A stretch of DNA of 64,000 nucleotides from Lepidodermella squamata (GCA_047495785.1 JBLDXI010000003.1:3410001-3474000), one strand, 5' to 3'; positions 26,198 to 61,282 are shown, numbered from the stretch's first letter. The notes: generated by a model from the sequence alone, not told the origin. Program-made: numbers and translations.

Positions 26198-27365
26198 TTT
26201 AATTTGTATCGCGGAGATAGGTGAAAAACGTTAAAATCGATAACGTTGATAGATGAATATGAATGAAGTGAACGGTGCTGCTGAACTTGTTGTTTTTCAC
26301 TCGTTTATAAACAGGCCGTCGTCGGCGCGTGAACGATTACTGCGGCAAAAAAGTGTTGCGTAATGCGTTTTGCCGCCAAATCGCGCGTGCACGTCGCGAT
26401 CACGGGGCAGCTTCCTTGTAGTAGTGTGAAAGAGCACCAACGCGTGCGCTTACATTAAGGGCACAAGTCTATTTATGAATCAATCACCTGGTCGTCTGCC
26501 ACACATAATTTAGCCGTAAAATGAGAGCGCTTGCCATTCACAGATTTACAACTCACAGGCCACTAGAAAATAGAACAGTACCTAATTAAGATCAAGAAAT
26601 TCAGAAATTTAGAAATTTAAAATGAAAAATTCGCGTCGCTGCCTTCACGAGTTGACCGAATGCTGAAGCTAAGGCTTGAACAAAATAATCACCTGAACTC
26701 TTCGAAGGTTTCATTTTCCATCGAAGCGAAAAGCTTTACTTAATTTTCCGATCCATTCCATACGAGAAATAACCAAACCATCAATTTCGGTAAAAAAATG
26801 GAAGACAATCTTAGTAAAGCTTAAATTTTCGCGCCATGTTTGAAAGTAATGGCATAGACATTTTTTAAAAAGATGGCAAAGATGGCGGATGCGGGCGCGG
26901 GAAGTTGAAACGTAATAAATGAACTTCCGAGGCTTCCGGGATTGAATAAAACAATCTCGACTTGCTTGGGATGGTGAAATCCTGCTGAAGTGTTAAAATG
27001 AAACCATCAACCTCGGAATTCGATGAAAATTCTTCCATGATGCGCGAAATTAATCAAACTCTCAATCGAATTAATTTGTTTTGCTGTCCGATCGGCAATT
27101 CCGAAATTCCTCGTTGAATATACTGATGATTAGACCATACAAAAAAGACATCTCCCATACGACAATTCTGAATGAATTTATTCATATTATTTTCGATATA
27201 CAGATTTTTAATTAATAGCAATCTTTCCGTTAATCTTTCATGTTAAATAAATGATGCAGCGGTAAATAATGATCATAACATTTCGAATGTAGGTCACGCA
27301 TTTGACCTCAATGCGCACGCAATAAATTATCAAATAATATCGATATAATTAACACATCAGTTGAT

Positions 27366-30300
27366 TTAATGACGACGGTGGTACTTGCGAACGTGTTCCT
27401 TGAGCTGATCAGCGGCCTGGGCGTGTTCGAGGACGCGCAAAAACTCGCGCATCGGAACAACGCGATCGCGGTGATGGCGAGTTTCATCCTCGGAATCACG
27501 CGGCGGGATTTGCGCCAACATTTCCAGCAACGCGCGCTCCTCCAACTCGCGAAGGGTTCGTTTCGCCTCGTCCTCGTTGTTCTCGTCCAGGTACTCGGCG
27601 TTGTTGTCGCCATCACCGCTGTGATGCAACTGGAAACCGTGATGGCCAACTGATTTCATGTCGGTCTTCTCCTGAGACTGCTGTTGACGTTTCATCGCGG
27701 CGAAATGGCGCCTAACGTTTTCGCGCTGCTCCTCGGAAAGAGTCTTCATCTTCTTTTCTTCGTGATTTTTCACCTCTTTCGACTCGTTTTTCTTAGCCTT
27801 GGGTTCGCCGATGTGCTTCGATTTCTTTTCGGTCTTCTCCTCTTCAGGATTCTGTTGCTTCTTCTCCTGCTTTTCAGCCTTAGCCGCGAGCCTTTTGACC
27901 TTTTTGACCTTTTTCTCCCCAGATTCGGCGGCTTCATGAGACTCCGCTTTCTTGGCTTCAGGCTTCTTGACGGCTTTTTTCGGCTTTTCCTCTTCAGATT
28001 GCTTCTTCTCCTCCTCTTCATTTTCCTCGTGTTTCAAAGCTTTCTGAACTTTCTGGATCTTTCGGGTCGGCTTGGGCTGTTGTTCCTTTTCCTCTTCGGA
28101 GACTTCCACCGCTTTCTTGACCTGCTTTTTGACAGCGGTTTTCGGTTTCTTGACATGTTTCTTCACCTTGACGACCTTCTCCTCGCTTTCCTCAACGTCT
28201 TCCTCCTGGCGACGAACAGTTGGCTCTTCGTCATTCTCCTGTTCTTCCTCCTCGTTGATCGTCTGCAAGTGCTTCGACGATTTTTCGATCATTTTCACGT
28301 CGACCAGCCGATCGCCGACGTACGTGTTGCCGCGGATTTCCAACGGTTCGTGATTGACGATTTCAAGCTTGACCTGCTTCAGCATCTCGTCGCTGTTCGG
28401 GTGCACGTGATCGTCCTCTTCTTCCGGAATCGCTTCCATGCGGACCGGCTCCTCGTGACTATCGAAAAAAAAAATTAATTAATCGAATTTTGTTGAATTC
28501 AATAGAATTCAATATTGTTGAATTCAATAGAATTCAATATTGTTGAATTCAATAGATATGTTTCAATAGAGAAGCGATTTCGACATTTTCTTTTCATGAT
28601 CGATACTGATGCCTGGCATCTTATATTTTAGCTTCTTGGTACCCTAAGCTATGAAGAAAAATTATCGATTTTGGGTTCAAAGACATTTGATATCGGAAAA
28701 ATCACTGATTTTTAAGATCGATACTGGGAATCGATATCAGTTCTTCAAGCTGAAGTAATACTCGTAAACTGACCACCCAGAGCGCAAAATATGCGTAATA
28801 TCGAGGTCTATCGGTTAGGCATGAAAAGAAAAAATTGAGAATATAGAAGAATTGAACTTATAGAATTTCTGATAAAATTATGAAAATTCTAACAAATCTT
28901 CGCAATTTTCTGACGAATATTTCTATTTTTAAATTAAATTAAATTAAATTTTTCTATTTTTAAATTCGAAAAAGGACAGTTCTACACTGTTTCAGTTCGA
29001 ACAATTTGAAATATGGTTCTACACAAAGATATTTTGATTGATTTTCGTATTTTAACTTCGGCTTACTCGCGGCGCTGTTGGCGGTACTGCGAAAAATAAA
29101 CATTTTGACGCGGTGATTTCGCCGGGACCCGTTCGTAGACAATCTCAGGCTGTTCCAGGTAGACCGGGGTCTGGCGGCTTCGGACCGGCTTGCTCTCTTC
29201 AATCGGACTCTCGGCATATTGGCGGCGAGGAACTGGCTTCTCTTCATAAACTTCGACAGGCTTTTGCAGGTAACGGCGGGGCAGCTTCTTTTCGAAGTTC
29301 TCCGGGTTGTAGAACTGCTGATGAAGCGGCTGTTGCTGTTGTTGAGCTTGATCGGCGAATAATTCAGCCTGGCGGGTTCGGATTGGCTTCATAACAACCT
29401 GTTGGCGATTTTCAGCCTCGTAAAACGGCTGGCGGTTCATTTTCTCCTCGACCACAATTTCAGGCTGTTGCTGCGGCTGCTCGACCAAAACCTGGCGAAC
29501 TTGCATTTTCCGGCTCGGTTCAACCGGCTGTTGGCGAGCTTCGAACTGAGTGTTATCCTCATAAATCGGCTGCTGACGGTTCGACTTGTCATCGATAACC
29601 ATTTCATACTGTTGTTGAGGCTTTTGTTCGGCCAGCTTTTGATCAGCCATAACTTGAGCATTATTAGCGACCTGTTGTTGCTGTTGCTGTTGGAGCTGAC
29701 CGGCCGATTTCTCATTTCGAAGCTCAGCGTTGAAAATCTGCTGCAAGGTCGGCTTTTGCTTCAACAAATCAGCCAGGTTCGATTGACGCGGCTTGTCACC
29801 GAAAATTTCCGGGTGCGACAGCCGGGTTTGGGCCAAAAATTGACGAACCTGCTCGCGGCGCAAATTCTCCTCAGCACTGTCGCGAACAGCTTTCCTCGAC
29901 AAAACCCGCGGGTCGTTGACAGCAATTTGTTGCTGCTGCTGGGCTGGTTGAACCTTACGAACAGTAAACGTAACCGGGCCTTGTTGGGTATTTCGAAGGA
30001 CAGGCTGGTTAACAGCAATCGGTTGGCGCGATTTCGGGACTTGCTGATATTTGACCTGGTTCTGGACAACAGTGACCGGCGCGTTTTGTTGCGGCTTAGC
30101 AGCAACCTGAGGTTGAACCTTAGCCTGCTGGCCACCTTCCAACTGCTTGGCCTGTTGAACTAACTGATTCTTCCGTTGTTCATCGCCTGACACCTCGCCG
30201 TTCTTCTTCTTCTTAATCACCTTGGTAAGGGTTGTTTTAATCTCAACCGAATTGCCGCCCGTTTCCTTCAGCGTTTTAGTTTTCATCGTCTTGATTTCGA

Positions 30301-30670
30301 AAGAACCAGACTGACCGGCCTCTTGATAGGCGTTGCGGATCGATTCGAGAGACATACCACTCATGCCGTCGTCTTCCTCCTCGACCTCTTCGTCGTCGGT
30401 TTTCGGCTGGTCGGCATTTTCTCCTTCATTTTCTTGCTTTTGCTTTTCCTCCTGCTGCTGTTTTTGTTTCTGTTCTTCCTGAGCTTCTTTCGCCTTTGCT
30501 TGAGCCGCTTCAGCCGATCCTTCGTAATCAGCCTTCTTCTGCTTCTTTTGCGACGAGGCTAGGCCTAGAAACAAAGATCAAAATTTAATAAAATTTCTGA
30601 AATTTTTTAATTAAAACTTACTCAGGCAAACAGCACTGGCTAAAATTAAGGCGATAAGTAATAATCGCAT
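27366..30670 (-). CDS. Secreted 879 aa protein, Gln-rich then Glu/Lys-rich (exons 30670-30622, 30564-29067, 28458-27366); joins two track ORFs
   Basis: Signal exon MRLLLIALILASAVCL A|gtaag. The apparent stop of ORF 29063-30574 (GAG TAA) is a phase-2 donor GA|gtaag that matches acceptor ttcgatag|T CAC GAG of ORF 27366-28439. Total 2640 nt, divisible by 3. Confidence 0.8.
28490..28556. repeat. Short intronic tandem repeat (25-nt unit ttgttgaattcaatagaattcaata, ~2.6 copies)
   Basis: Directly visible; each unit contains the palindrome ttgaattcaa. Confidence 0.7.
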
Positions 30671-30819
30671 TTGCGGCAATAAAATCCTAAATAATAAAAA
30701 AAAATTCCCAGGTCAGTAACAAATTATCAAATGTCTTACAAAATTATCCTGAAATTTAGCTAAAAAAGATGAAAATCTTCAATGAAAATTAGAGTGGGTG
30801 AAAAATCATTTTTACGGCG

Positions 30820-30912
30820 GGCACGTGATATTACGCAATGCCATTTCCAACCTGATGAAAAAAGAACACGCGTGCTAGTCGCGCGCCAAACGGTAATTAT
30901 TAGCCACGCGAC
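30820..30912 (-). promoter_or_regulatory. Putative promoter module of the 30670 gene: CACGTG, TTACGCAA, CACGCGTG, CACGCG
   Basis: cacgtg 30822, ttacgcaa 30831, cacgcgtg 30867, cacgcg ~30905. Confidence 0.55.
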
Positions 30913-31304: not shown

Positions 31305-32102
31305 TTAAGGCTGGGCTGGTTTCTTCCACCACGATGGCCAATGGGGCGGAATGAAAATCGCCGGGGAAGTAGTCGAGCCGAGTTCGGGAGTCGCCATAGT
31401 CGTGGTTGTTGTAGTCGTTGAATCCAACTGCTCGAAATTGAATAGATTCCCAGCTTCAATCTGAACTTCATTGCCTTCAGCTGGTTGTTCGGGTGTCAAC
31501 GCATCACCACCAAAAGACGGAGAAAAGACAGCTTTCAGCATAACAGGCTCAGGCTCGGTTTCATCGGTCGGTTGTGGCAATGGTATAAACCCATCGCCAC
31601 TGAAAGAAGGAGAACCAGGTGCTTTCAGCACAGGCCCAGGCTCGGTTTCATCGGCGGTTTGGGGAGATAGGCCATTTTCGTTGACAGTTGACCAGAGTCT
31701 CGGGCCAGAATCGGCGTTATCATCACCTCGAATTCTCTTCACAACTTCACTCTTCCGCGGGTAGTCTGATTTTCTCAGTTCTTCCGAGCAATAGCCAGGC
31801 TTGATGCCATTCGACGAGTCGTCTTCGCCGCCGATTTTTTTCAGCAATTTGTAAATATTGCGGCGAACGACCCTTTCCTCGCGAACAACCAGCGGCTCGT
31901 CATCGCCGGTTTCAGGGTGGAATCGCTGAACTTCAATTGTTCGCTGGATGATCGATTGCGAGTTGTCTTTATCGTGGCTCTCGTCCGAGTCGTACTTGAC
32001 GAAGTCGAATGAGATATCGCCGGATTTTTGGCCCACGTGTTTGCATTGGCAATTACTGGCCAGTAGTATGACAGCTAAGGCAATCTTCCAAGTGAACAGC
32101 AT
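31305..32102 (-). CDS. Secreted acidic Pro/Thr-rich protein, 265 aa, single coding exon
   Basis: Signal peptide MLFTWKIALAVILLASNCQC; internal duplication (PQTADETEPGPVLKAPGSPSFSGDG / PQPTDETEPEPVMLKAVFSPSFGGDA); poly-Thr; Trp-rich C-terminus PPHWPSWWKKP. CGCGTG boxes upstream (~32266, ~32313). Confidence 0.8.
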   Translation of the reverse strand: MLFTWKIALAVILLASNCQCKHVGQKSGDISFDFVKYDSDESHDKDNSQSIIQRTIEVQRFHPETGDDEPLVVREERVVRRNIYKLLKKIGGEDDSSNGIKPGYCSEELRKSDYPRKSEVVKRIRGDDNADSGPRLWSTVNENGLSPQTADETEPGPVLKAPGSPSFSGDGFIPLPQPTDETEPEPVMLKAVFSPSFGGDALTPEQPAEGNEVQIEAGNLFNFEQLDSTTTTTTTMATPELGSTTSPAIFIPPHWPSWWKKPAQP

Positions 32103-33170
32103 GACTAAAACACAGACCTAGAAAAATAATTCACGTTATTTTTACTGACTAATTCAATTAAAATGAAGCAAAAGCAAACAATGTTCAAGAGTACAATTGA
32201 TAGCAATGACTCGGTTATAGGTATTGCAGCTTCAGGGTTTATAGGTATCACATGTGTTGAAAAGTCGCGTGGAAAGCCTCCAAAATGGTGTCAATAATTT
32301 GTAGAAAACAGCGCGTGCTTTTTTGGAGTCTGACTCGGTTTGGGTCCACACCTGTTTCCCAAAATTGATAGCACAAGCAGACAATAAACAGGACGACATT
32401 TATTTGCTTAAAAAATAACATACATCTGCTGGTTAAAACCTTTTCATGGCGGGATTTTTCCAACTCAGCAAAAAAATGGAATTTTTGAAGAGGAGAAAAC
32501 GGCACCGTATCCTGGACAAGGGACAGATGCGCGTATTTCCGTTTCTGATTAAACTGAAACTTTCAATCCCGCCAGTTTTAAAAATGCCTATAGACTAATC
32601 TGATGACTTATTTGAATTCAAGTTTGAGTTCATTTGAAATCGTCAACAAGGCTACTGTTTCGTCAGTTTTTGAGAAAATTGAGACGACAAAATTGGAAGT
32701 CGATTGGACCCTGTCCGACACACCTGTGAAGTGAAATAGACAAAAAATAGCATAGGTCATAGGTATACTTTTCTTATCTATCTGTTTGAATTTGAAAAAT
32801 TATTCAAAATTATTTGATTCCGAGAAGGGACAAGGTATACATAACAAGGTGATATATCAGTTCAGATTTTTCAAGAATTTGTTGATTGTTTGTTCTATTT
32901 AATTATTTCAGATGAAAGGAAGTCAAAAAATGTTAAACTCGAAATAACAGCATACGGCGTAGCAGCGCAAGCGACAAAACAGCCGTTAAATGATCTCAAA
33001 TCAACTCAGTTGTACCCAGTTGTACCGAAATTCTTCCGATTTGTTATTTCCAATTTCCATAGACAAGAGTCCCGAAAAAAATTCTCCGGGGGTTTTCGCT
33101 ATTGATTCAAAATATCCCAAAACACCCTAAACAGTGTCGGTAGAAAACCCTGAAAAATAAGCACAAACAC

Positions 33171-34217: not shown

Positions 34218-36053
34218 TCAGATGTAAATTTTAGTGCCAACCGGCGCCACGTGCCGCTTCTTGACCAGATGATGAGGCTTTTCGTTTTGAGCCAACTTGA
34301 CTTTGCGCAGTTTTCGGAACATTTTCCCAAGATTCTTAATCGCCCGAAATTGATTGAGGTCTATTCGAGAATCTGACTTGTGGTGATGGTGCTTCTTCTC
34401 ACCAGTACCGTGACGCTGAACGATAGGCTTAACCTCAACAGGTGGTTCCGCATCATCAGTTACCGGAACTTTCTTGGCCCTTCTAGATTTCCAAGAATTT
34501 TGCAAGGTTGGAGGTGCTGGGGTCGCCGTTGTCGTAGTTGTAGTTGAAGTCGTAGTTGTTGTTTCTTCAACAGGAGTTGGGGTGGTATCAGCAATACTCG
34601 ACTCACCTTCGTGCGACGAGAAGACGTTCACGACGATAGCCGGTGGCTTCTCTGCCTCAGCCTCAGATGACTTCGGCTTCACAACTTCCGGATTATTTTC
34701 TGGTTTTGGCGGGTGTTTTCTGGCGACCTTTTTCTTCTCAGATTTTCGCTCATTATTGCCGCCTGAATTTGAGAAGATTTTCTTAGATTTAATAACTTCA
34801 ATCTGGCCAGATCCTTTCAACTCTTTCGGCGGGATGTCCTTCTCGTTGTAAAATCGCTTCGATTTAATGAGTTTCAACTCGTAAGACACGCCGTTTGAAG
34901 CCTTGTAGTGTTTCGATTTTATCTTTTTGAACTCGACAGCGGCTGGGGGGTTCCGACCATCATCTCGCCACTTTGTCTCCTCTTCGTCGACATTATCCGG
35001 CCCACGGGTGATTAAGCTGGGTTCAGAGGTGACTGCGGTTGCTGACGGCGTAATCGCTGTTACTGCAATGGCTGTTGCTGTTGGTGTGGCTTGAGATGGA
35101 TCCACTCCACTTTGCTGACTCAATTCAAAATCGCCGGAATGTCCATTACGTGATGCGTAATTGTGCCTCCTCGATCGATGTGCACTGGAGACTGCCGATA
35201 AACAAAAAAATATATTAAAAAAAATGAGAGAGAAATTCGAACATGATTACCGCAAGTTTGGGCAATTTCGGATAAAACCATGTTTTTCGGGGTTTCAAAA
35301 TCAGTCTCAATTCAGTCTCAAAATTTATAATATTTGAGGCAAACATGTTTAGGTTAATTTCAGATTTACCTGCAAATTTTTGTGATTTTACGATTTTAGC
35401 CTGATTTTTGGTGATCGAAAACATGTTTGCATCAAATTTGAATAAATTTCGACTCTCATTTGCATGTAGAATGGCATTGAGAGTTTTCAGTTTTTATTGA
35501 CCCTCAAATTTCGGAAAAAATTATGAATAGGTGGTGCATCAACTAATTTTCAAAAATAATGGGAAAAATACCCGCGTTTAAATTAAGTCCGTAATCACCC
35601 GATTTTCACCTGCCAAATGAAGTTACAGCTTATGACTTATGAAATTTCTTAAAAATAAAATCTTGCTCCAATAATCCCGAGAATTGCGGCATTCGAAAGC
35701 TCAATAGAAGGGCAATTTATGCCTCAAACCTGGTGTTTTTATCACACGGGATTGCAAAGCTTTTCGCCTATAAAGACGAAGTTTCCAAAGTTACCCTGTC
35801 CAAAATTTTCTTGCGCTCCGGTAGAATATAGTTTATTTTGTTTTTTTTGATAACTAATGACTGATCCTGAAATTTACAAATGACTTGAAAATGGCAACTT
35901 GCCAGGTAAAATCAAAATACAAGATTAATAGCTACTGCTTGAATGCAGAAAAATCTGAGATGCCGGAAACCGGTGGTATAAAAATTATTTATTAGAGTGA
36001 AACATACCGATTGCTAGGCTTGCGATTATAGCTAGAACCAATAGTGGCCGCAT
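34218..36053 (-). CDS. Secreted Thr/Lys/Pro-rich protein, 339 aa (exons 36053-36008, 35191-34218)
   Basis: MRPLLVLAIIASLAI G|gtatgt ... cggcag|TC TCC AGT GCA, in frame with ORF 34218-35123. Three KxIKSK(H/R/K)-aromatic motifs, poly-Thr, HHHH and a basic amphipathic C-terminal segment. Confidence 0.85.
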
Positions 36054-36514
36054 TTACGATAATTGCCCTGCAATATCAGAAGAGATGGTGCAACATCTAC
36101 GACGAAAAAGGTCAACAACGCGATAAAATAATTATTTGAATGAAGGTGTATAGCTAGTGTGAATTTTTCATGAATGGAAACATATCGGTGTCAAGCCAAT
36201 AACAAGTTACGTTTTAGAAAATAGTCGCGTGCCGTGTCGCACGTGATTAAATAAATGTTTCGAAAACATGAAGACGTTTACCATGCGTTTACCTCAAACT
36301 GTTATTTTCAAGATGACGAAAACAATAACAAAATGTACGTGTAAAAAATCTCAACAAGAAAAGCACAACATTTGACCAAAATTATTTCCGGATTTATTGG
36401 AATCCAAGTTGGAATGACATTTTTCAGACGAAAATCGCCAGATCGAGAAAATAAATAAATTAAAGATTAAATACACAGAAAAATCAAAGGCTTTATCATT
36501 CAAGACTCGTCAAT

Positions 36515-37948
36515 TCATTCGTCATTGTCTTTCTTGTTAGGTTCGCTGTTAGCCTGAGGCTTGGGCGTTTCTTTCTTCTGTTCCAGCATGACCTTGGCCC
36601 GTTTTCGACGTAAATACTTGCGAGCTTTGATCAAGTCTGACATATCCGAAATGCTGAGAGAAAACGACACCTCAGAAGCGCTCTTATTCTCGCCACTTCT
36701 CTCGATCGAGCGAGGCGGCTCAGGCTTGGGCGGGTAAATAATTCTCGCAATGCCAGGCTCATCGTCACGCTCGTCACGCTCTTCACGCTCGGCCGACTTC
36801 CTGCCGTAGAAATTTGCAAGTTTACGAGCCCGAGACGATGATCCAGATGAAGCAGAAAACTTTCTCGTTCGTTTCTTCGGCTCACTGGCCTGGTTGGACT
36901 CCGACTTTTTAGGCCCCTTAGGATTCCGTTTGCCACGACTGAAGCTGCCGGATTTCGAGCGGCTTTGCTGCCTTTTAAACGGTCTAATTTTCTTCGGCCT
37001 TCCCGCATCAGATTTACGTCGAATAATCTTCTTTTTGGGTGGAATTTTTACCGGCCGCTTCGATGGAAGTTTCCGCACTCCTTCCAGAGAATCCTTCTTA
37101 GGTTGCTGCTTCGGTTTCTTGGCTGGGAAAAGCTTGGTTCTTTTAGCCTTGCTACTTGAAGCCGGTCTAACAAGCTTTCTCTTCGCTGGCTTTTTCACAG
37201 GCTTGACGATTTTATTCTTGTTAACAACATTTTTCTTGACTGGCTTTTTCGGACTTGGCTTCGGCGGGGTTCGTTTCTTCTTGGCTAGCTTATTCGGGAT
37301 TGAGTCCGAGAACCTTCGGCCATCTTTCAAGAATAATTTGCCTTTTCGCGAATTGTTAGCGGCTTTTTTCACTGGTTTCTTCCCATGCTTCTCCGGCAGC
37401 TTTTTCGGAATCGATGCAGACGGTTTACGCGATTTGTTAGCTGGACGAGGTTTCTTCGAAGGAATGCCAACTTCAGCCGAGTAAATCGAGTCGACCCATT
37501 TGGGTCGGTTTTTACGTTGGACCTTTTTCTTAGGCACCTTTTTGGCTGGTTTCTTCCGAATTTCACCAAGAGATATCTCACTCGAATGGACGCTTCCTCT
37601 CAGTTTCATGATCAGCCTTTGAGCTGAAAGAGAAAGCTCAGATTGGTCGCAGGGCTTCGAATTTTTCGGTTGAGCTTTCGGCCTTGAAGATGAAGGCTTC
37701 TTGCCAGGTCCCGACCGACCATCGCTTTGTTGACGGCGGTAATTTTCAACTGGCTTCTTATTTCGAGGGGCATTTTCCGATGAATCAGCTGCAGGTGCCG
37801 AGCCGGCGTCTGACTTTGAGCTGGCAACATCTCCAGCCTCAGCTTTATGAAAAAAAACCCAAATTTTAAGGTGGAATTTTCAAAATTATGCGAACTAACC
37901 TAGGCAAAGCAGGAGAAAAACTGCGGCAGTGAATAATAAAAGCCGCAT
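36515..37948 (-). CDS. Secreted very Lys/Pro/Arg-rich protein, 458 aa (exons 37948-37900, 37842-36515)
   Basis: MRLLLFTAAVFLLLCL G|gttagt ... cataaag|CT GAG GCT, open into track ORF 36515-37609; many KKP motifs. Confidence 0.85.
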
Positions 37949-38411
37949 GCTCGGCCTGCTAATAAAAATATGTGAAAAATAATTCCTATAATACGTGAAA
38001 AATTAGGATAAAAAACCGAAAACGTTCTCGAAATTAACCTCAAGAACGTAAAACGCTGTGAGGTTCGCACGTTTCCTCATTATTAAACCACGCGCCTCGT
38101 CATGTTGTTTTTTCCTAAACACGCGATCTGGATAAAGGATTGTGAAAAGGTTCTTAATTTCAGCAGACCAACATTTGACCGGATTTGAAGCCAAAAGTGC
38201 ATTTTCCCAAAATTTCTGAAATTTGACCATAAATAAAAAAATAGCCGACCCTAACATTCTATACGTGATTTCCAGTATAAGGCCTATGGCCATCCCTTCC
38301 AAAAAAAAATGTTCGAAATTCCTTTTGGTGATCAATAAATATTTTGTTTCGAAAATCAACCTGTAACCCAGATGATTATTTTATTTATCGATTATCGAAT
38401 ATGAACCAAGT

Positions 38412-39784: not shown

Positions 39785-42391
39785 CTAATGGTGATGATAA
39801 TCGGCGTAGGGGTTGAAGTTTTCGCGACCCTGGTAGTCTCCCGAATAGTCGTAAGCGCCGAAGAAGCCCTGGCGATGGTCGTCGTAGTAGTAATTCTCCC
39901 TCTCCTTGCTCAATTCACACTGCCCGCCACTGACAGACTTTGCCTTTTTCTCACGCTTCGGCGCTGATTTCTTGTTGTAGCCGGACTTTTCTTCATCGTA
40001 ACTGCGAGACTTTGGCTTGGTGTAGCTTTTCTTCTCGATTTTAGGGTGGGACTTCTTGCCGTACGAGGCCTTTTTCTTCGGAGCCGAAGCCGACTTGCTG
40101 TAGCTGCCGGACTTGGAGACAACTTTCTTGCCCTCGTACTTTTTACCTTGAGTCTTCTTGCCCTTACCCTTGCCCTTCACAGAGGCAGATTTCGATCCTT
40201 TGCTATAGCTACCGGAGCCGTAGCTCTTCTTAGGCTTTGCGGCCTTTTTTGTAGGTTTTTTCGCCTTAGAGTAAGAGGCAGCCTTCTTGCCATACTTGCT
40301 GGGTTTCTTGTTTTGCTTCGGGGCGCTGTAAGACCGATCCTTTGAGACGGAGACAGATTTCCGGTAGTCATGAGTGCCGCGGGAAGCATTAGCATTGGCG
40401 CGTTTGCGGCCGTACTTAGCTCCAGCCTTGCGGGCGTGGGCAGAGTCGGAGACGGAAGTCTTCTTGTTGCTGGCCTTGTACTTGCGGGCATTGTGGGCAG
40501 CGCGGGAGACGGAAGCCGAGGCACGGCGTTGGTGGGCCTTGTTGCGCTTCGCCGACTTCGAGGCAGCAGCGGCAGTGGCAGCCGAGTCGTAGGACGCATA
40601 GGCAGCGGAGTGGGCCTTGCGAGCCTTCTTGCCGCCGGCCTTCTTTCCGGTCTTTTTGCGGGTAGCAGTGGTGGCAGCGCCATCAGAGTCGTAGTAGCCG
40701 AACTTCTTGGAAGACTTTTCTTCGCTGAACTTGTTTTCCTTGTTGTGGCCCTTGTCGGCGAAGCCCTTCTTCTTGAACTCAACCTCATCTCCAGTCTTGT
40801 CATGGTCCTCGTCCTTGGTGAAACCAGCCTTGCGTTGTGTGTGAGATTTACCGAATTTCTTGCCTCGCTTGTGCTTCTGAGCAGCAGCAGCTGCGCCAGA
40901 GTTGTAGGACGCCTTGCCGAATTGCTGGACAGCTCCAGAACCACTGGCGCGGAACTTGCGGCCACGGCGCTTGCTGCCGGCCTTCGATTTCTTTTGGTCG
41001 TAGGCAGAGTCGCGCTTGCCAGCCGAGGCGTAGCTGGCTGAGGCGCGTTCGCGGTTGGCAGAGCGGTTCTTGATAAACTTGCGCTTGTCGCTGGTCTTCT
41101 TGTTGTGGGAAGCATCGGCCGAGGCGTAGTCGACGGCACCGAATTCAGCTGCAGCTGAGGCGGATTTGCGGTCGTAGATGTCGCGTTTGTCGACTGAGAC
41201 AGAGTACGAAGCCTTCTTACCTCTTTTGCCTCCCTTCTTGTAACCTTCTTTCTTGAATCCTTTAGTACAAAAATATTTAGATTTAGAAGATAGAGTGGCT
41301 ATTGGGTGTCACCTGACGAACCAGCACGCTTCTTATTGTAACCACTTTTCTTGACTTCTTTCTTTCCCTCGCCTAAATCAATTCTTCATTAGAATATAAC
41401 TGGAGAAGTGTTATACTATTTCTTACTCTTAGACACTGACTTCTTGTAGCCGAACGAGCGATTGCCGTAAGAGACTGACTTGGAGACAGACTTGGAGGCC
41501 TTCTTTCCACCATAATGGCCAGATTTCTTTTTCGCCGGAATGGCCTTCGGCTTCTTGCTCTTGCCGTATGAAACCGACTTCGTATCAGATTTGCTGTTGG
41601 AAACCTTCGGCTTCACGACCTTCTTGCTCTTCTTCGGCGCCTGCTTCTCCTTAGGAGCAGCTTCAGGGGTGTAAGCGCTCTTCAGACGGATGGCACTAGG
41701 GTTAAATCCGCCCTTGCTTGGCTCTTGATAACCGCTGTTCGATCGTTCACTGGCGCTAGCAGATCGGCTGTCGCTCTTCTGAGCCTGGCGTGTCTTGTGG
41801 TTAATTGCCCCACGACGACGACCTACAATAAATTATATGAATCATTAATTATTTAATTTTCCCGTGTGGATCCGAAAATTCCCAGCTTTGGTAAAACGAG
41901 AAAGAAAAATTGAGAATTTTCAGCTCAAATTTTGAATAAAGATTGGAATTTGAAATGGGTTTTTCAAAGTGGAACCCTGAATTTGAGGCTAAAAAAGGTT
42001 TTTCGAGGTTAATAATATTGAAAAATTCGTCTTGACCTTAATTTCCGGTCTAATTAGGTCACCTAGGAAATTGTAAAAAAAGCGGCTCGATTTTGATTAG
42101 AGTGACTCACCATGTTTGGCTTGGTTTTTCTCCTCGCTGCTGTCGATGCTGGTTGAAAATGAGCCAGAGTTGTACTTGCGGCCTCTCAGCTCTAGCAAAT
42201 GTTTGCGAGCTTTCACAATATCGGAGAGATCGGACAAGCTGGTCGAGAACGAAACCTCAGTATGAACCTTGCGTCCTTTCTTCGCAAATGCTGTTGGCAG
42301 AAAATTTGAGACGAAATTGAACAAAAAATCTCAACTAACCATCAACGCAAGAAAACAGCGCTAGCGCGAGTAGCGCGAGATAAAAACGCAT
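39785..42391 (-). CDS. Secreted Lys/Ser-rich protein, 720 aa, hairpin-family member with Tyr/His tail (exons 42391-42340, 42290-42111, 41822-41427, 41372-41313, 41259-39785)
   Basis: All four introns are GT-AG and phase 1; total 2163 nt. The last exon carries the FKKKGFADKGHNKENKF core and ends ENYYYDDHRQGFFGAYDYSGDYQGRENFNPYADYHHH. Confidence 0.8.
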
Positions 42392-45581: not shown

Positions 45582-46096
45582 CTTTCAGATAAATATGATG
45601 AGACTGAAATTAAATTAAAAAAAATTGAAATGAAATACCTTCTTATTTCGAATTAGTTATTCCTGAATAATGATTTTTTGTAGTAAAATCAAGCGTTTTT
45701 ATTAGTGAGCCAGTGACGGTGTTGCGTCACCGGGCTGCGATCGGTTTTTCTCTCACGAGTCGCGCGAATGTTGAAATTTTTCAGTCGAAACGCGTGCTTT
45801 TGCAAAATTGTTTTTCAAGGCTAAGTAAATGCGTTGTTTCATTCATTAGGTGATCACATGGACACGTGGCGGCTAATGGTCTAGAGATACAATAACACAG
45901 GTTGACCTATTTTATTTTAGGGAAATTTGAACCGGTTTCGGAAATTAATTCAACTCACAATTGTCGCAGACAGTTTTTATTTCAAATAAATTAAAAATTA
46001 TTTCAATTTTATTTAGATTTTAGATGCTCTTCATTAGTTAGTCCTCGACTTTGATTTTTATTCCTCTCCTTTATTTTCTTGTTAGATATCGGAATA
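45582..46096. promoter_or_regulatory. Probable bidirectional promoter between head-to-head secreted-protein genes
   Basis: ATGs at 45581(-) and 46097(+) are 516 nt apart; contains ttgcgtca 45722, acgcgtg ~45790 and cacgtg ~45863. Confidence 0.5.
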
Positions 46097-47191
46097 ATGA
46101 AGGCAATTTTAGCTATCACCGTTGCCATTTTGCTGGCTTCGGCCGGTGAGTTGTCATTTTACGCTTGATTTATCTGATTTTATTCCGTTCCAGTCTTCGC
46201 CGGAGGAGCAAGGAAAGGCGGTAACAGAGGTCGCAAGTTGTCATACTCAGCATCAGTCGACAAACGCGACACCTACGACCGCAAATCCGCCTCAGCTGCA
46301 GCTGAATTCGGTGCCGTCGACTACGCCTCGGCCGACGCTTCCCACAACAAGAAGACTAGCGACAAGCGAAAACTGATCAAGAACCGATCGGCCAACCGCG
46401 AACGCGCCTCGGCCAGCTACGCCTCGGCTGGCAAGCGCGACTCAGTCTATGAACAGAAGAAATCCAAGGCTGGCAGCAAGCGTCGTGGCCGCAAGTTCCG
46501 CGCCAGTGGTTCTGGAGCTGTCCAGCAATTCGGCAAGGCGTCCTACAACTCTGGCGCAGCTGCTGCTGCCCAGAAGCACAAGCGAGGCAAGACATTCGGT
46601 AAATCACACACGCAACGCAAGGCTGGTTTCACCAAGGACGAGGACCATGACAAGACTGGAGACGAGGTTGAGTTCAAGAAGAAGGGCTTCGCCGACAAGG
46701 GCCACAATAAGGAAAACAAGTTCAGCGAAGAAAAGACGACCAAGACCTTCGGAGAAGCCAACTCCGATGCTGCTGCCACCACTGCTACCCGCAAAAAGAC
46801 TGGAAAGAAGGCCGGCGGCAAGAAGGCCCGCAAGGCTCAATCTGCGGCCTATGCGTCCTTCGACTCGACTGCCGCTGCCGCCGCTGCCTCGAAGAGCGCG
46901 AAGCGCAACAAGGCCCACAAACGCCGTGCCTCGGCCTCCGCAGCCCGTGCCTCGCAAAATGCCCATGACTTCAAGGCTAGCAACAAGAAGACCGCCGTCT
47001 CCGACTCTGCCCATGCCCGCAAGGCTGGAGCTAAGAAGTCGAAAAAGCACGCGAAAGCTAATGCTTCCCGTGGCACGAAGAAGTCGAGAAAGTCGGAAAA
47101 TGCTCGCATTAATACTGTTCCTGCCAAGAAAAAAGTTGCCCATTCTTTCGATAGCGTCGCCTCGGAGCTAAGCAACTCAAGTGATTTTTGA
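46097..47191 (+). CDS. Secreted Lys/Ala/Ser-rich hairpin-family protein, 348 aa (exons 46097-46145, 46194-47191)
   Basis: MKAILAITVAILLASA G|gtgagt ... ttccag|TC TTC GCC; in frame with track ORF 46238-47191; DKGHNK core. Confidence 0.9.
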
Positions 47192-47750: not shown

Positions 47751-48532
47751 TAGGCAATCCGCTTCGACGTCGCAGAGCACCGTAGGTATAATATCACTGA
47801 CATTATTAGCCCATTTCGGTTAATTGGGTAAAATCCATAGAAATCTCAACGGGTAAAATCAGACGTTTTTTTGCAGAACATTATCCGTATCTTTCTAGCT
47901 TCTGGATTGTCCGAAACTCAAGTAGGTAATTAGATCCCACTTTTCATGCAAAGGTTCAAGTAGTGACTTTTCGATTTTCGATTTGGGAAACTTGACCCCT
48001 CTGCTAAATAAAACATTTCCAAAATTAATTAACGCTATAATGTTCCACATGCTTCAACCGTAATTAGAATAGCTTCATTTCTGCGAACTAGAGTACATTT
48101 CAAGATCCAACATTCAAAAAGAGCGGACCAACGGACTTTTCCAATAATCATTTCCTTAAGATTTAGTCGTTTCGGCTCACTCGGAAAAAAGGTTTTTCAC
48201 CAGTTGAAATTGCGGCTATTTTATAGATTTCACGTTTTAGAACCTGAATTCACCTGATCGGGGCAAATTTGTTAAAAATGAAAATATTTCCAATTTCTTC
48301 AAGCGTGATGTGTTGTTTACAATCAGTAAATCAAATCGCGTGATCAACCTTGATGAAAAACATGCTTTCCACGCCGTTTTCCACACCGGAATCGCGTGCT
48401 CGCTCGGTAGTTTTCCCGGTTGCGCAACACGTCGATTGATTGGATATAAAACCAACCCGGAATCAAGACCAATATCATCAAGTTTTAATATTTCTATATT
48501 TATTATTCAATTAAAACATATCTATTCCTAAA

Positions 48533-49854
48533 ATGCGTTTCGCTCTCGTAGCAGCAGTCGCTGCCCTGTATTGCGTTGGTAGGTCTATAAATTTTCAATT
48601 ATAGCCAGTGATTTAATTTTTTGGATTCGATTTTCAGCCGCCATCTCTGCTGATGCCTCGGCTTCAGTTGACAAGAAATCGGCGTCTGCCTCGGCTGGCA
48701 TTGACAACGTCAAGAAGACTGGTCTGACCTTCATCCACGGCAAGCGCGGTGGTCGTCGCGGTGGTAACGGTGCCTCAGCCTCTGTCAACAAGAACTCTGC
48801 CTCCGCCTCGGCTGGCGACAAGCGTGGCAAGCGCGGATTCTTTGGTCGCCGTCGTCGCGGCAACTTCGCTTCTGCCTCAGTTGACAAGAATTCCGCCTCT
48901 GCTTCAGCTGGCAATGGTGGCCGCCGTGGCGGTCGCTTCTTCGGCCACAAGGGCCGTCGCGGCAACTTCGCCTCAGCCTCAGTTAACAAGAACTCCGCCT
49001 CCGCTTCGGCTGGCAACGGTGGTCGCCGTCATGGTCGTTTCTTCGGCCACAAGGGTCGTCGTGGTGGCAACTTCGCCTCGGCTTCAGTCAACAAGAACTC
49101 CGCCTCCGCTTCGGCTGGCTCCAACAAGGGCCGCAGGGGCCACAAGGGCTTCGGCCGTCGCCACCACGCTGGTCGCTACTTCGGCCACGGTCGCCGCCGT
49201 GGAGGAAACTTCGCCTCTGCCTCGGTCAACAAGCGCTCCGCCTCGGCTGCTGCCGGCAAGTTCCGCGGCCGCCGTGGTCATCATGGCAAGTTCTTCGGCC
49301 GTCGTCACGGTGGTCGTCGTGGTGGCAACTTTGCTTCCGCCTCTGTAAACAAGCGTTCCGCCTCTGCTGCCGCTGGCAACTTCCGCGGCCGTCGTGGTCA
49401 CGGATACTACTTCGGACGCCGTCATGGCGGTCGTCGCGGCGGCAACTTCGCCTCGGCTTCGGTTAACAAGAACTCTGCTTCGGCTTCTGCTGGCAACTTC
49501 CGTGGCCGCCGTGGTCACCATGGCAAGTTCTTCGGTCGTCGTCACGGTGGTCGTCGTGGAAGCTTCGCCTCAGCCTCCGTCAACAAACGCTCTGCCTCTG
49601 CTGCCGCTGGAAACTTCCGTGGCCGTCGCGGTCACTTCGGACGCGGTCGTCGCGGTAACTTCGCCTCTGCCTCGGTTAACAAGCGATCTGCCTCTGCCTC
49701 GGCTGGCAATGGCCGCCGTGGTGGTCGCTTCTTCGGCCACAAGGGTCGTCGTGGCAACTTCGCCTCGGCTTCAGTCAACAAGAACTCCGCCTCTGCCTCG
49801 GCTGGCTCCAACGGCAAGCGCGGTGGATTCAAGCACGGTCGCCGTCACTTCTAA
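48533..49854 (+). CDS. Secreted 420 aa Gly/Arg/Ala/Ser block-copolymer structural protein (exons 48533-48578, 48638-49854); true frame absent from the ORF track
   Basis: MRFALVAAVAALYCV G|gtaggt ... ttttcag|CC GCC ATC TCT GCT; open to TAA 49852-49854. Eleven copies of ASASV(N/D)K(N/R/K)SASA(S/A)AG separated by GRRGGRFFGHKGRR-type blocks. TATAAAA at ~48445. Confidence 0.9.
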
Positions 49855-50374: not shown

Positions 50375-51104
50375 TTTCGATTTTTCGTGTTGGAGGGCCA
50401 CTGAACCTACTTGATTTGAATTCCCAAGGTGGCGTGGCCATGGGTATAAAATACTGCTTTTGTTATCTACCTGAGGTTTGTTCAAAAACGTTGGACACAA
50501 ACTTAAAAAGTCAAACCAACTGGCAGAACAATTTTTTTCTCATACAAAGTTGGTAAGGGTGTTCGTCAAGAAGCATGGCTACGAAGCGTTTTGTTGGTAG
50601 TAAAATTTAGCTTGAACTGGAGTATTGGCGGTAAAATTACTCATATAAAAAAGCTCTTTAATCGCTTTTTACTTATCACCCGTGACATTGAAACGGATGT
50701 AAACAAGCCTAAATCCGAGTTATTCAACGACGCTAACGATATGGATCAATCAGATCGCGTATGAGAGTTCCAAGCTAATGAACCTTTTTCTATCATGTTT
50801 CGATTTGCTATTAATTGCTTTTATTACTTATATCTGACGCATGTTCGTAAAATTCGAGGGAGAAATTAGTTGAAATTAGTCGAATAAAACCCAGCCAAGT
50901 GGTTTTTAGTCTCAAGTACCGTAACGGTGGTCTAATTTGGACAATCCGCCTTCGTTCAGCTCCTGGGGTTCAGTTCGTTGCAACGATTGACTACTTGTTG
51001 GAATACAATTGCTCATGAAAGCAAAGGACTAGCTATTTTCATTGCGTAATCATCACAGCGTGAGAAACTTATTAGATAGTTTTGGTTAGTCAGCGTTAAA
51101 CGGA

Positions 51105-54304: not shown

Positions 54305-55403
54305 CTAGTAGTAGTGCTTGCCACCCTTCTTGCCTCCCTTCTTGCCGCCCTTCTTGCCGTAGCCACCATCGCGATAGCTGGCAGATTCACCGGCATGGAA
54401 GTCGTGGGTGGCGCGTTCAGCCGAGGCGGAGGCACGTTTGCGGCTGTGCTTGGCTCCAGCCTTGCGGGTGTGGGCAGAGTCGGAGACGGCGGTCTTCTTG
54501 CTGCCGGCCTTGTAGTCGCGGGCGTTGCGCGAGTCACGGGCAACGGAGGCCGAGGCGCGGCGGTGGTGGGCCTTGTTGCGCTTCGCCTTCTTCTCAGCAG
54601 CGGCGGCCGAGGCCTTCGAGTCGCGGGAAGCGTAGTCGGCAGAGTGGGCCTTGCGGGACTTCTTGCCGTGGGCCTTCTTGGCGGTCTTCTTGCGGCTGGC
54701 AGTGGTGGCGGCGCCGTCAGAATCGGCCTTGGCGAACTCTTGCGAGCCGGACTCGAAGCTGAACTTGTTGACCTTGTTGTGGCCCTTGTCGGTGAAGGTC
54801 TTCTTCTTGAACTCGATCACCTCGCCGGCCTTGTCGCGGGCCTGGTCCTTCTGGAAAGCAGCCTTGCGCTTGTGGTCGGCGCGGCCGGTCTTCTTGTTGC
54901 GCTTGTGCTTCTGGGCAGCGGCGGCGGCGCCAGAGTCGGCGTAGGCGTTGTCGTGCTTGGCGAAGGCAGCCGAGTCGCTCTTGCGGATCACGCGGTTGCG
55001 GCGCTTGCTGCCGGCCTTGGACTTCTTCTGGTCGTAGGCAGAGTCACGCTTGCCAGCCGAGGCGTAGCTGGCCGAGGCGCGTTCGGCGCTGGCCGATCGG
55101 GTCTTGATCAGCTTGCGCTTGTCGCTGGTCTTCTTGTTGTGAGAAGCATCGGCCGAGGCGTAGTCGAAGGCACCGTTTTCTTGTTCAGCAGAGGCGGACT
55201 TGCGGTCGTAGGTGTCGCGTTGGTCGACCGAGGCGGAGAAGGAGGCCTGTTTGCCACCCTTCTTACCACCCTTGCCTTTTCCATAGCCGCCAGCGAGGAC
55301 TGAAGCGCAAAATCATATATTTTCCGAGATATTGAAAATTACGCAAATACTCACCAGCCGACGACAAAAGCGCGATAACAGCAATAGCGAGAATAACCCT
55401 CAT
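54305..55403 (-). CDS. Secreted Lys/Ala/Ser-rich hairpin-family protein, 347 aa (exons 55403-55355, 55299-54305)
   Basis: MRVILAIAVIALLSSA G|gtgagt ... cttcag|TC CTC GCT GGC GGC. GGKK repeats at both ends, DKGHNK centre, ends KHYY. No Pro, Cys or Trp seen in the protein. Confidence 0.9.
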
Positions 55404-56533
55404 GGTTAAATAAAATCAGAAGAAATGAATAGATTGATCACAACAGCTTGATGAATAGGTTGAGAAAATACACCGGTCTTAAATATCGCGATAAGAGATG
55501 TGTTACGCAAAAGCGCCGCAAAAATTATTTCCACGCGCTTATTTTTTTGGCGCGTGTTACTTTGCTGCGCTCAGCGCGGCCCAGCGTGGGAAAGGAGAAT
55601 AATGTTTTCAAACAAGCTAAAAAAGGAGATCCACCTTAATCCAATTTTTCATTCCTAATTTTACAAATCCCTCGCAATGAGCTGTTCAGTTCCTGATTGC
55701 CAAACTTGCCTTGATGATGTTGCGTTGAAGCACCGTAAAAACGCTGAATGATAAGAAAACAAGTCGGTGTTCAGATTTCACAAATCAGCAACGTTTCCGT
55801 GCCACAATTTTGTTTTTTTGAGGAGAATCTATCATTTATCTGCTTGTTATCAACCAGGGTATCAAATGTAGCATTAGGTATTTGTAAACATGAAATGGGC
55901 ACATGGGAAAGTAAAAGGTTTTGCAACAAATGCTGAAGTTCACCAATCGATTATTTCCTGTTGTCTCTTGGACGAGTTACCTGCCGCATTGCTAGGTATT
56001 TCTTCGTCTGGTGTTGAAACTCAAAAAAAATATCGGTTGAATACAAAGATGATTCAGATTGGCCTACATTTAAATAGGTCACCGTTAAATATGCTTAATT
56101 TCGGAATGTCATCAACACACTTTTTATTGCACTCTCTTTCTTTAGACCGTACAAGTTGCGGGGTCAAACTGAAAGTTCACCTAATAATCAATGGAAAAAT
56201 AACAATTGTGATGAATCCTGTCCGCTATTTGGCTGATTTTTCTAAAATGCCGTCCAGAAATAAAATTCGCGCACGCGTTTTACAACGGAAACGGTGTCAA
56301 TTACAGCCACGTGACCGGCATCACCGCTTGTTCTTTTCTGGGTTTAAAGTTTAAATTTTTTGTTTACTGGGCCGACACGCGCTTCCGACGCGTGCGCGAG
56401 TGAGGCGATGCATAAAAATTGCGCAACAGGTTCTACACGAGTTTTAAAAGGCCGTACGCTTCTTAAACGTTTTCATCTATTCCTGCTGATAGTGAAATTA
56501 TTACTTTTTCAATTTAAATCCTACTGAAGAAAC

Positions 56534-58238
56534 ATGCGGATTTTTTTCCCGATCGCCATTGCGGCGCTATTCTGCGGTAACTTCAAAACATTTTTAAACA
56601 TTCTAAATAATTTAAAAAAATTAGGAAAAATTAATGGAAAATTTATTTAATTAATTCACGAGTGATTTGCGCTTTCGGACACCTCAATCAATTTTCATTT
56701 TAATTTTTTCTTATTTTAATTCAATTTAAAACGGAATTTAATTTGAAATTTTAATTTTTTCTGTAATTCAAGTTGCTGTTTCGGCTAACAACCGTTACGA
56801 CTCTGAAGATTCGCGTTCCTACTCTGACTACTCGGAATCGCGGCCGCACCACGGTCGTTACCGGAAGCACGGCTACAGCAGCGGCAGCGACAGCTACTCG
56901 CACGGTTCCGGCGGCTATTACCGCGGCTACAATGCCCGCGGAAACCCGATCAGGCTGCGCAACGCCGGGCCTGAGCAGCCTAGCGAGGCTAAGCCCGCCG
57001 CCATCCCGGCCGGTGGTGAACTGGACGTTGAGAAGTTCAAGGAATCTGGCAAGACGAAGATCGAAGCTGACGCCAAGTCCCTCGTAGCCAATGGCCAGAA
57101 CGTCCAGACTTTCGACAAGGCGGAAACCTCGAAGAAGACCGCCGAGGAGACCAAGGCGTCTGCTAAGGCCAAGTCGGAGAAGGAGAAGCTCGACATCTCC
57201 GTCAGCGCCACTGTTGAGGACAAGAAGTCGAAGAAGGACGCGAAGAAGTCGTGGAAGAAGAAGGCCAGCCACCAGCGCAAGAACTACAACAAGCACTCGC
57301 GTTCTAGCCAAGCGTCTACCTCTGCCAAGTCCAGGAACGAGAAGGCCAAGATCCGCGGCCGTGGCAAGTTCAACAAGCACGGCAAGAACAACCAGGAGTA
57401 CGAGGTTGACGCCGGCACTGAGAAGAAGCGCGATACTGACGTCATCACGTTCAGCCGCAACACCGACAAGGGCCACGATAAGACCTGGACCAAGAGCAAG
57501 GGCAAGACCAATACCGAGGACGCTGAATCTGGTGCTCTGAGCGGTTCGATCAAGACGAAGGCGTCCAAGAAGCACGCTAAGGCGAACAAGAAGGGCAAGA
57601 GCAAGGGCACGAAGAAGGGCTACTCGGCTGCCTCGAGGTACGCCAGCTACTCGTCCGACCAGCACGACAAGAAGCGGAAGCAGAAGGCCCGCCTCAGCGC
57701 CGACGTCAAGTACAACAAGGGCAAGAAGTACGCGAGTGCCAGCTACGAGAACAAGAAGAAGGCGAGCGAGAGCGCCTCGACGAAATCATCGAAGAAGGCG
57801 AACAAGGCGAAGATCGCGGCGAAGGATAAGTCCGTCTCTTACCACTCGAATTCCGAAGTTTCTATCAGCACCAAGAAGCAAGTCGCCCCGAAGAAGAAGG
57901 CGGTTAAGAAGCCTTCGAAGTCCGTAACCAAGGAATCGTCTGGTTCTCATTCGTACGTTCCCAAGAAGAAGCAACCGAAGAAGCAACCGAAGAAGGCCGC
58001 CAAAAAGCCGAAGAAGTCTGTTAGCAAGGAATCATCTGGCTCGCATTCGCCTGAGCCGAAGAAGCCCCAGCCGAAGAAGCCGAAAAAGCCGGTGCCGAAG
58101 AAGAAGCAGTCATCAAGCGGTGACAGCAAGAAGTCGAGCTACGAGTCGTGGAGCTACGACGGTAAGAAGGGCGGCAAGAAGGGCAAGAAAGCTGCCAAGG
58201 GCAAGAAGGGCGGTGCTTTCTTCGACTTGGATCATTAA
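56534..58238 (+). CDS. Secreted Lys/Ser-rich hairpin-family protein (subfamily B), 502 aa (exons 56534-56576, 56773-58238); true frame absent from the ORF track
   Basis: MRIFFPIAIAALFC G|gtaact ... ttcaag|TT GCT GTT TCG GCT; open to TAA 58236-58238. Tyr/Ser/Gly/His N-terminal block, ITFSRNTDKGHDKTWTK core, KKP tail, ends FFDLDH. Confidence 0.88.
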
Positions 58239-60394: not shown

Positions 60395-60583
60395 GGGTGT
60401 GTTTTTTTTTACTCACCCCGAAATTTCGGGTCTCCCACTTCTGAAGCTCATCTTGAAATGAAAACTTTAGAGCTGTATAGAAGACTTCTTAGCCCGATGC
60501 CCGAAAGCCTCTGGTGGTTACATTTTATCCGCTGATTGAGCCTGAGCTTCCCGAAATTTCGGGGAGATTAAAAAAGCACACCC
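60395..60583. mobile_element. MITE, PIF/Harbinger (Tourist)-like
   Basis: GGGTGTG...ccccgaaatttcggg / cccgaaatttcgggg...cacaCCC imperfect TIRs, with AAT on both flanks (3-bp TSD). Confidence 0.6.
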
Positions 60584-61109
60584 AATAATAAAAATATAAT
60601 AAAATACTAATTTCAAGCAATTGGGAAAATATGTTCTAGTTCAAATTTTTTGTCTAGCAAATTTAGGCCACTCGTGGGGCGTATAAGTGTGTTCACGTGA
60701 TTTTTTTCCTATCGTCACAAAAAATCAATCAATCGCGCTATAAGGTGTCAATAATACGAATTAAAATGCGGTCAGAGCCATCATTATGATATTTTAAATA
60801 ATTGATTTTTCCGATAGGAGCTGAAGTACCATGAAGCTAAACAAAATCACAAGGTCATGGGTCATCAATATTCCCAGTATCAATCAACACTTTTTGAGGT
60901 ACAATTTTTGAAATTAAATTTCATTTTATTGTCCATGATTTATCATTAATTATTTGCTCATCTGTCGTATTTTCATCGCCCGCTGTATTATTTCTTTTCA
61001 GTTTTCTGAAAATTATCATTGTCGGAAATTCGGTCGAATCGGTTTTATCGGTGCCCGTGCCAAGAACTTCTCTCAGCGCAAAAATAACCACCCTGTGATG
61101 CGTAGCAAG

Positions 61110-61190
61110 TCGCGTGCCAAGGAAAGACGCGTGCCGCGCGCGAATCCACCGGGGTTGCGCAACACCTGAGCGGCGGGCGTTTTATAAGAA
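61110..61190 (+). promoter_or_regulatory. Putative promoter module of the 61283 gene: CGCGTG x2, TTGCGCAA, TATA-like
   Basis: cgcgtg ~61111 and ~61129, ttgcgcaa 61155-61162, tttataag ~61181; the same combination recurs before other cluster genes. Confidence 0.55.
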
Positions 61191-61282
61191 AAAACACACG
61201 ACTCGTAAACATTTTTTCTTTGAAGTTTCAAGATATTTTTATAACTATTAATATTTATTTTATCAAGTATTGAAACTGTGTC

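Follow-up and report, generated by a model that had tools for sequence, protein, structure and literature searches.

Can a set of genes be recognised by its promoters when most of its products no longer resemble one another? This question is raised by a 64,000-nucleotide (nt) stretch of the genome of Lepidodermella squamata (GCA_047495785.1, JBLDXI010000003.1:3410001-3474000), hereafter the window, in which sixteen genes for predicted secreted proteins are interspersed with ordinary genes. A first-pass annotation of this DNA had proposed that non-homologous genes in the cluster are run as one regulon by a pair of transcription factors of the basic leucine zipper (bZIP) and basic helix-loop-helix (bHLH) families, acting through TTRCGYAA sites and clustered CACGCG/CACGTG boxes above the ATGs. 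The explanation that we favour, and regard as likely, is that a shared proximal promoter code runs this battery of secreted-protein genes in one cell type or stage; to judge from their promoters, the sixteen genes are probably switched on together. To our knowledge, nothing is known of gene regulation in Gastrotricha. The window has a GC content of 44%, against 43% in the published L. squamata genome (PMC11660948), and no RNA family was identified by Rfam within it.

Sixteen secreted-protein genes with a common 5' layout

Signal-peptide ATGs were located without reference to the motifs, and splice models were checked afterwards; exons were joined solely in local scripts for reading-frame checks, whereas the database searches used single exons. 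The ATG search and splice models together yielded sixteen secreted-protein genes, which lie from 8 to 63 kb of the window (Table 1). Fifteen of them have one 5' layout, in which a short signal-peptide exon 1 (40-52 nt in total, including the ATG) ends at G/GT in phase 1 within the signal peptide, and a large exon 2 opens with the Ala or Val codon that completes it; g31 (ATG 32102) is the sole single-exon gene. Intron 1 measures 48-59 nt in 11 of the 15 split genes. It is longer in g34 (tentatively linked to a large exon at 34218-35191 by an 816-nt intron), in g40, in g57 and also in g21 if that gene is joined to the downstream Pro/Thr-repeat open reading frame (ORF) at 19712-20998. Whether this ORF belongs to g21 is uncertain; without the join, the g21 intron is 52 nt.

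The products are mostly of low complexity and include Lys/Ala/Ser-rich and Gln-rich proteins, Pro/Thr repeats, PAKEER repeats and a silk-like 100-120-nt repeat, while g17 encodes an acidic secreted peptide of 78 amino acids (aa). Comparison by tblastn grouped g46 with g40 (88%) and g54 (70%), and more distantly with g8, g44 and the g43 exon (family A), and g57 with g61 (69% over the C-terminal half; family B), and detected no similarity among the remaining cluster genes. Given the same 5' structure in 15 of 16 genes and several paralogues, it is doubtful that the genes are non-homologous, as the first-pass annotation had them. The code may accordingly have come down with the genes and been kept, instead of being acquired by each of a set of unrelated genes. 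Outside the cluster, a word search of public proteins found no relatives of g46, a profile of four family A members found none among 1.84 billion representatives, and Pfam returned nothing for the cluster proteins.

Grouped CACGCG/CACGTG boxes mark the gene set

The hexamer CACG(C/T)G has 64 matches on the two strands of the window, made up of 45 CACGCG (25 expected) and 19 CACGTG (7.5 expected), and no dinucleotide shuffle was as high for either. With a box group defined as at least two separate boxes within 80 nt, 15 groups were found. Every one of them precedes one of the 16 ATGs by 88-306 nt, and one group is common to the divergent pair g44/g46. No multi-box group lies elsewhere in the window; the remaining 'pairs', at 24662 and 47628, each consist of a single palindrome (CACGCGTG). 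The regions from -260 to -61 of the 16 genes hold 35 boxes, compared with 3.8 in local dinucleotide-preserving shuffles (maximum 10), and two or more boxes occur in 14 of these regions against 0.5 expected; the corresponding figure for background 250-nt windows is 0.27%. At 41% GC, the commonest hexamer in these regions is CACGCG, ahead of AAAAAA. Furthermore, an unbiased k-mer ranking of the 250 nt upstream of the genes against the rest of the window placed CACGCG, CGCGTG and CACGTG on top, with CGCAACAC as the best 8-mer, and so recovered the words that the first-pass annotation had chosen. All the boxes that it listed are present ahead of secreted genes, and the g31 promoter can be added to its list. 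Each gene has two to four exact boxes, approximately 60-150 nt upstream of the predicted transcription start; 29 of the 38 promoter boxes are CACGCG, in the flanking context R-CACGCG-H-Y.

A scan of one-base substitutions gave 31-fold enrichment for CACGCG, 13-fold for CACGTG and 29-fold for CGCGCG, every other variant reaching 5-fold or less. The enrichment of CGCGCG points to a dimer that recognises C(A/G)C half-sites, a logic that we do not know to have been described for Hairy/Hes/Hey factors. Candidate cores of other kinds were rejected: the outer-C/G variants that keep the AhR/Dys-type GCGTG, the CAMTA-type ACGCG and Myc-type non-canonical boxes are not enriched, a CATGCG core was ruled out by the same scan, and a by-product of CpG islands was ruled out by the one-base variants together with the local shuffles.

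It might still be argued that the boxes are a general promoter property of this genome, or of its CpG-rich unmethylated DNA, and not a code of this gene set. The ratio of observed to expected CpG is 1.7 in the promoters against 1.2 in the window, and three ordinary genes have a single box approximately 90-103 nt upstream (13982, 39506 and 52708, ahead of trypsin-like, GT-like and BTB-BACK genes), a frequency (3 of 12) not significantly different from the 10% background rate. However, other CpG hexamers, including the one-base variants, are not enriched (CGCGCG excepted), and about 10 interspersed ordinary genes and candidate ORFs have zero or one box in the 300 nt upstream, and never two. Thus, within this window, the motifs are not equally represented in ordinary promoters, which agrees with the first-pass annotation. 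The controls include genes identified by Pfam as lipocalin, trypsin-like, signal-anchored GT-like and BTB-BACK. The lipocalin and the proteases are secreted too, and since they lack paired boxes the code marks a gene class and not secretion or a regional property of the DNA. We therefore regard a general promoter property as very unlikely.

The nearest approach to a further group is a pair of CACGTG boxes at 59256 and 59349, which at 93 nt apart fall just past the 80-nt threshold. No convincing signal-peptide exon was found downstream of them, and the pair is either the sole near-exception to the rule or the mark of an unrecognised gene.

An oriented C/EBP-like site and the core promoter

Half of the promoters (8 of 16) have, in addition to the boxes, a bZIP-type site. 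TTRCGYAA occurs exactly 16 times in the window, compared with 6.4 ± 2.6 in dinucleotide-preserving shuffles, and this excess is due to seven exact promoter sites at 26356, 30831, 42530, 48420, 55503, 56419 and 61155; the eighth, at 45722, is the variant TTGCGTCA. All eight coordinates in the first-pass annotation proved right, and the sites lie 100-161 nt upstream of independently found ATGs, namely those of g25, g29, g40, g44, g48, g54, g57 and g61. The element is longer than had been described, and it is oriented: it reads TTRCGYAA-CAC, with CAC on the gene side in six cases, CAG in one and TAT in one. CGYAACAC was found 10 times against 2.1 expected, and the six copies at these promoters are, without exception, directed towards the gene.

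The C/EBP consensus has been given as RTTGCGYAAY (PMC3871648). This decamer occurs at 9 places in the window (1.6 expected), with 5 of these counted at the promoter position, and among the eight promoter sites four fit it exactly, three deviate at one base and one at two. Because 12 of the 16 half-sites are TTGC, with three TTAC, the promoter site looks C/EBP-like and not PAR-like. The earlier assignment to a joint C/EBP/PAR-bZIP consensus is thus supported in its first half, whereas PAR-bZIP is disfavoured, as the PAR-bZIP/NFIL3 D-box TTAYGTAA is also absent from the 16 promoter regions.

The same counts bear on a possible link to the circadian clock, since an E-box together with a TTAYGTAA-like bZIP site is a classical pairing in clock-controlled genes. 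The cluster might then carry a clock-output code, in which CLOCK/BMAL E-boxes and a PAR-bZIP/NFIL3 D-box time the rhythmic secretion of cuticle or shell, and three promoter sites do have a TTAC half-site. Nevertheless, the prevailing half-site is of the C/EBP type, the D-box is missing, and three quarters of the boxes are CACGCG, not CACGTG, so that we find a clock code scarcely credible.

In six of its eight promoters the bZIP-type site begins 23-28 nt ahead of a TATA-like box, in four or five it begins 53-56 nt ahead of an initiator-like (Inr-like) TCAT(T/C), and in five its distance from the start of the nearest upstream box is 26-30 nt. Among the eight promoters without it, only that of g31 has a clear TATA box. 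The GC content at third codon positions (GC3) is 0.86-0.88 in g25 and g54 (for example, exons 25401-26054 and 54305-54991, both on the minus strand) and 0.60-0.70 in g44, g46, g8 and g61, compared with 0.41-0.55 in most non-cluster genes. High GC3 may reflect codon bias from very high expression, and its presence in genes of the bZIP/TATA class lends the code a little support.

Several further words were noted around the predicted starts. An Inr-like TCATTCA or TCATC(A/T) recurs approximately 30 nt past the TATA-like boxes, at a distance of 50-106 nt upstream of the ATGs (at 8105, 9347, 26128, 35963, 42285 and other positions). TCATTCA is present in 5 of 16 promoters and in 15 of 448 background segments, and may be a general initiator of this genome. 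TTTTTCA occurs in 9 of 16 upstream regions, for the most part between the predicted start and the ATG, and in 47 of 448 background segments. Perfect RTTGCGYAAY sites outside the proximal position were found at 11971-11980 (ATTGCGCAAT), between the lipocalin and a trypsin-like gene, at 51041-51050, 3' of the BTB-BACK gene, and at 42723-42732, 333 nt upstream of the g40 ATG, where the site may be a second, distal one for g40.

Other candidate motifs gave little. In the 16 promoter regions there was no enrichment of CRE, CrebA-like sites or further E-box types, nor of GATA sites (WGATAR, ratio 0.7) or N-boxes (CACNAG, ratio 1.1). TCACGT, with a ratio of 3.2 from 4 sites, did not count as enriched either, and for the Grainyhead-like AACCGGNT the 2 sites in promoters and 6 in the background are too few for a verdict.

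Table 1. Promoters of the sixteen secreted-protein genes, in window coordinates.
Promoter	Description	Span	Strand	Boxes	bZIP-type site	Other elements	ATG
g8	family A-like	8032..8203	+	8032 CACGCG, 8048 CACGTG, 8067 CGCGTG	none	Inr-like TCATTCA at -95	8201
g9	162-aa secreted protein	9280..9399	+	9280 CACGCG, 9309 CACGTG		Inr-like TCATTCA at -50	9397
g17	78-aa acidic	17546..17763	+	17546, 17617, 17633		exon 1 49 nt, intron 56 nt	17761
g21		21983..22172	-	22147, 22167			21985
g25	Lys-rich	26195..26446	-	26326, 26384, 26441	TTACGCAAcac 26356-26363 (- strand)	TATAAA at -112	26197
g29	Gln-rich	30668..30910	-	30822, 30867/30869 (palindrome CACGCGTG), 30905	ATTGCGTAAT 30830-30839		30670
g31	single exon	32100..32317	-	32266, 32312		TATAAA at -141	32102
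g34		36051..36245	-	36226, 36240		Inr-like TCATTCA at -90	36053
g36	Lys/Pro-rich	37946..38125	-	38089, 38120			37948
g40	composite with family A domain	42389..42571	-	42518, 42566	TTGCGCAAcac 42530-42537	Inr-like TCATTCA at -106	42391
g44/g46	divergent, 516-nt intergenic	45579..46099	both	45791, 45863			45581 (-, g44), 46097 (+, g46)
g44 side of divergent promoter					variant TGACGCAAcac 45722-45729, facing g44	CGCGCG at -185	
g48	repetitive silk-like	48337..48535	+	48337, 48393	GTTGCGCAACac 48419-48430	TATAAAA 48445; Inr-like TCATCAA 48475	48533
g54	family A	55401..55556	-	55532, 55551	TTGCGTAAcac 55503-55510	TATTTAAG at -82	55403
g57	family B	56272..56536	+	56272, 56308, 56376, 56389	ATTGCGCAACag 56418-56429	TTTTAAAAG at -92	56534
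g61	family B, PAKEER repeats	61111..61285	+	61111, 61128, plus CGCGCGCG 61135	GTTGCGCAACac 61154-61165	TTTATAAG at -100	61283

Activation or repression through the boxes

If the shared code is read as an activating one, a factor that dimerises on C(A/G)C half-sites, in the simplest case a bHLH protein, would bind the boxes and so turn all the genes on in a single secretory cell type or at a single stage. Eight genes would add a single oriented C/EBP-type bZIP site, TTRCGYAA-CAC, approximately 25 nt before a TATA-like box and near -55 from the Inr-like TCAT(T/C) start, and this site could define a TATA-containing subclass of higher output or different timing. Of the single bZIP and bHLH regulon proposed earlier, the shared code is retained, its motifs being specific to this gene set within the window and fixed in position; the single pair is not, as 8 of the 16 promoters lack the bZIP site and what all of them have in common is the boxes.

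Several points weigh against a shared activating code. The control set consists of the ordinary genes of one 64-kb window. The eight promoters without the bZIP site contain nothing within one mismatch of TTRCGYAAC. Box orientation is mixed, and the spacing between boxes, from 13 to 72 nt, follows no rule, while the spacing regularities of the bZIP-type site were noticed post hoc and rest on predicted starts. Finally, CACGCG is classically a site of HES/Hairy repressors.

This last point leads to the main rival explanation, in which the boxes are silencers through which a HES/Hairy/Hey-type repressor holds very strong structural-protein promoters off in the wrong cells or at the wrong time, and the bZIP site or elements that have escaped recognition do the activating. 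The R-CACGCG-H-Y flanks resemble the Hairy optimum. The core CACG(C/T)G, moreover, is exact; CACGCG has been published as class C and CACGTG as class B among the sites bound by Hairy, E(spl), Hes and Hey (PMC1950541), and the earlier identification of the boxes as sites of this class stands as far as the hexamer goes. It finds no support in the N-box: those factors mainly repress and also use N-boxes, whereas in these promoters the N-box is not enriched and CGCGCG is. Furthermore, eight of the box genes have no other shared candidate activator site, multiple core-proximal copies in every member fit a main driver better than a brake, and Hes1 on a class C site can activate too (PMC1950541). On balance we consider silencing through the boxes unlikely, and prefer the activating code.

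Descent of the promoters and 5' ends

The promoters do not align outside the motifs, even between paralogues, which rules out that they are copies of one repeat or mobile element. Paralogue similarity at the DNA level (g46/g40, 89%; g46/g54, 79%; g57/g61, 80%) stops inside exon 2. Nonetheless, the common exon 1 and phase-1 intron argue for a shared origin of the 5' ends, and the sixteen genes are probably not independent. The motifs could in that case be functionless leftovers, a historical trace of the duplication of an ancestral promoter, and common 5' descent is made plausible by the layout of 15 of the 16 genes and by the several paralogues. But the surroundings are randomised even between paralogues with 79-89% identity in exon 2, while the hexamers persist in exact form and in number, as does the oriented 11-mer with its spacing; neutral decay would erase words of 6-11 nt. 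The retention of exact words, in number and order, amid randomised flanks argues for selection on the motifs, and that they are a mere trace seems to us very improbable.

Together, these features suggest that the genes are either an old and highly diverged tandem superfamily or the users of a repeatedly employed 5' cassette, in both cases with the switch kept by selection. The second of these, a portable 5' cassette as the conserved unit, repeatedly joined to unrelated or reshuffled coding exons, is a reading to which we give a low probability. Such a cassette might, equally tentatively, comprise the box cluster, an optional TTGCGCAACAC with TATA, the phase-1 signal-peptide exon of 40-52 nt and an intron of approximately 55 nt. 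Pointing towards it are the end of paralogue similarity inside exon 2, the make-up of g40 from g36- and family A-related pieces, and the variety of mature proteins behind the same 5' layout, from the acidic 78-aa peptide to the silk-like repeat protein and the Lys-rich families. If it were true, new secreted matrix proteins would be born already wired into one secretory cell programme.

Comparison with known systems

Co-regulated clusters of structural genes with shared factor sites are already well known, and in kind the present one is ordinary. The nearest published parallel is the chorion locus of Bombyx mori, with its tandem and divergent arrays of secreted, fast-evolving structural proteins and short 5' flanks. 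Silkmoth chorion promoters have C/EBP sites, an essential hexamer with an ACGT core (TCACGT) and divergent pairs, and types of C/EBP site mark temporal subclasses (PMC4639761). The L. squamata cluster resembles them in its divergent pair g44/g46 with shared boxes, in its bZIP-site subclass and in its compactness, with 16 genes in 55 kb and motifs within 310 nt of the ATG. It differs in its box, which is CACGCG/CACGTG and is preceded by T in 4 of 38 cases, TCACGT being enriched only about 3-fold; in its GATA sites, which are not enriched; and in its proteins and phylum, which are unrelated. Moreover, function has been established experimentally in the moth, whereas here it is predicted from DNA. 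The bZIP-type sites themselves have two features that are not known from C/EBP sites, the CAC on the gene side (6 of 8) and the fixed place approximately 25 nt before TATA. A search of the literature on both motifs together returned incidental co-occurrences only.

The vertebrate SCPP cluster, too, is a tandem set of secreted, disordered and fast-diverging proteins whose kinship is visible in the exon structure around the signal peptide and not in sequence. The likeness is one of evolutionary mode only, with no sequence relationship. For g31, a language-model search of the protein atlas gave sub-threshold look-alikes only, among them weak MEPE/ODAPH-like cluster matches with scores below the meaningful level.

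Within 64 kb, a two-word promoter code picks every orphan secreted gene of the cluster and nothing else. The code could be used to search the whole genome for the remaining members of the battery and could give a handle on the cell type that makes the material, be it cuticle, eggshell or adhesive, and it offers a compact candidate promoter for reporters. The cluster also shows cleanly how short regulatory words can survive when neither the coding nor the flanking DNA is recognisably similar any longer.

Other features of the window

An open frame of 2419 codons occupies 79-7338 on the plus strand, its start lying at or past the window edge; it encodes a Ser/Thr-rich, mucin-like sequence that includes a transmembrane segment and has a basic, repetitive tail. 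The g40 region (39785-42391, minus strand) looks composite: the signal-peptide exon at 42391 is followed by a stretch (42270-42178) that resembles the g36 C-terminus, by the family A domain (41237-40374; 89% DNA identity to g46) and by a further Lys/Gly-rich ORF at 39785-40180. Finally, the family A-like exon g43 (43686-44170, minus strand) has a good acceptor (ttccttag/GCC) approximately 620 nt past the g44 stop. Between that stop and the exon there is no signal-peptide exon, box or TATA of its own, and g43 may be a fragment that lacks a promoter, or g44 may use it as an alternative 3' exon.

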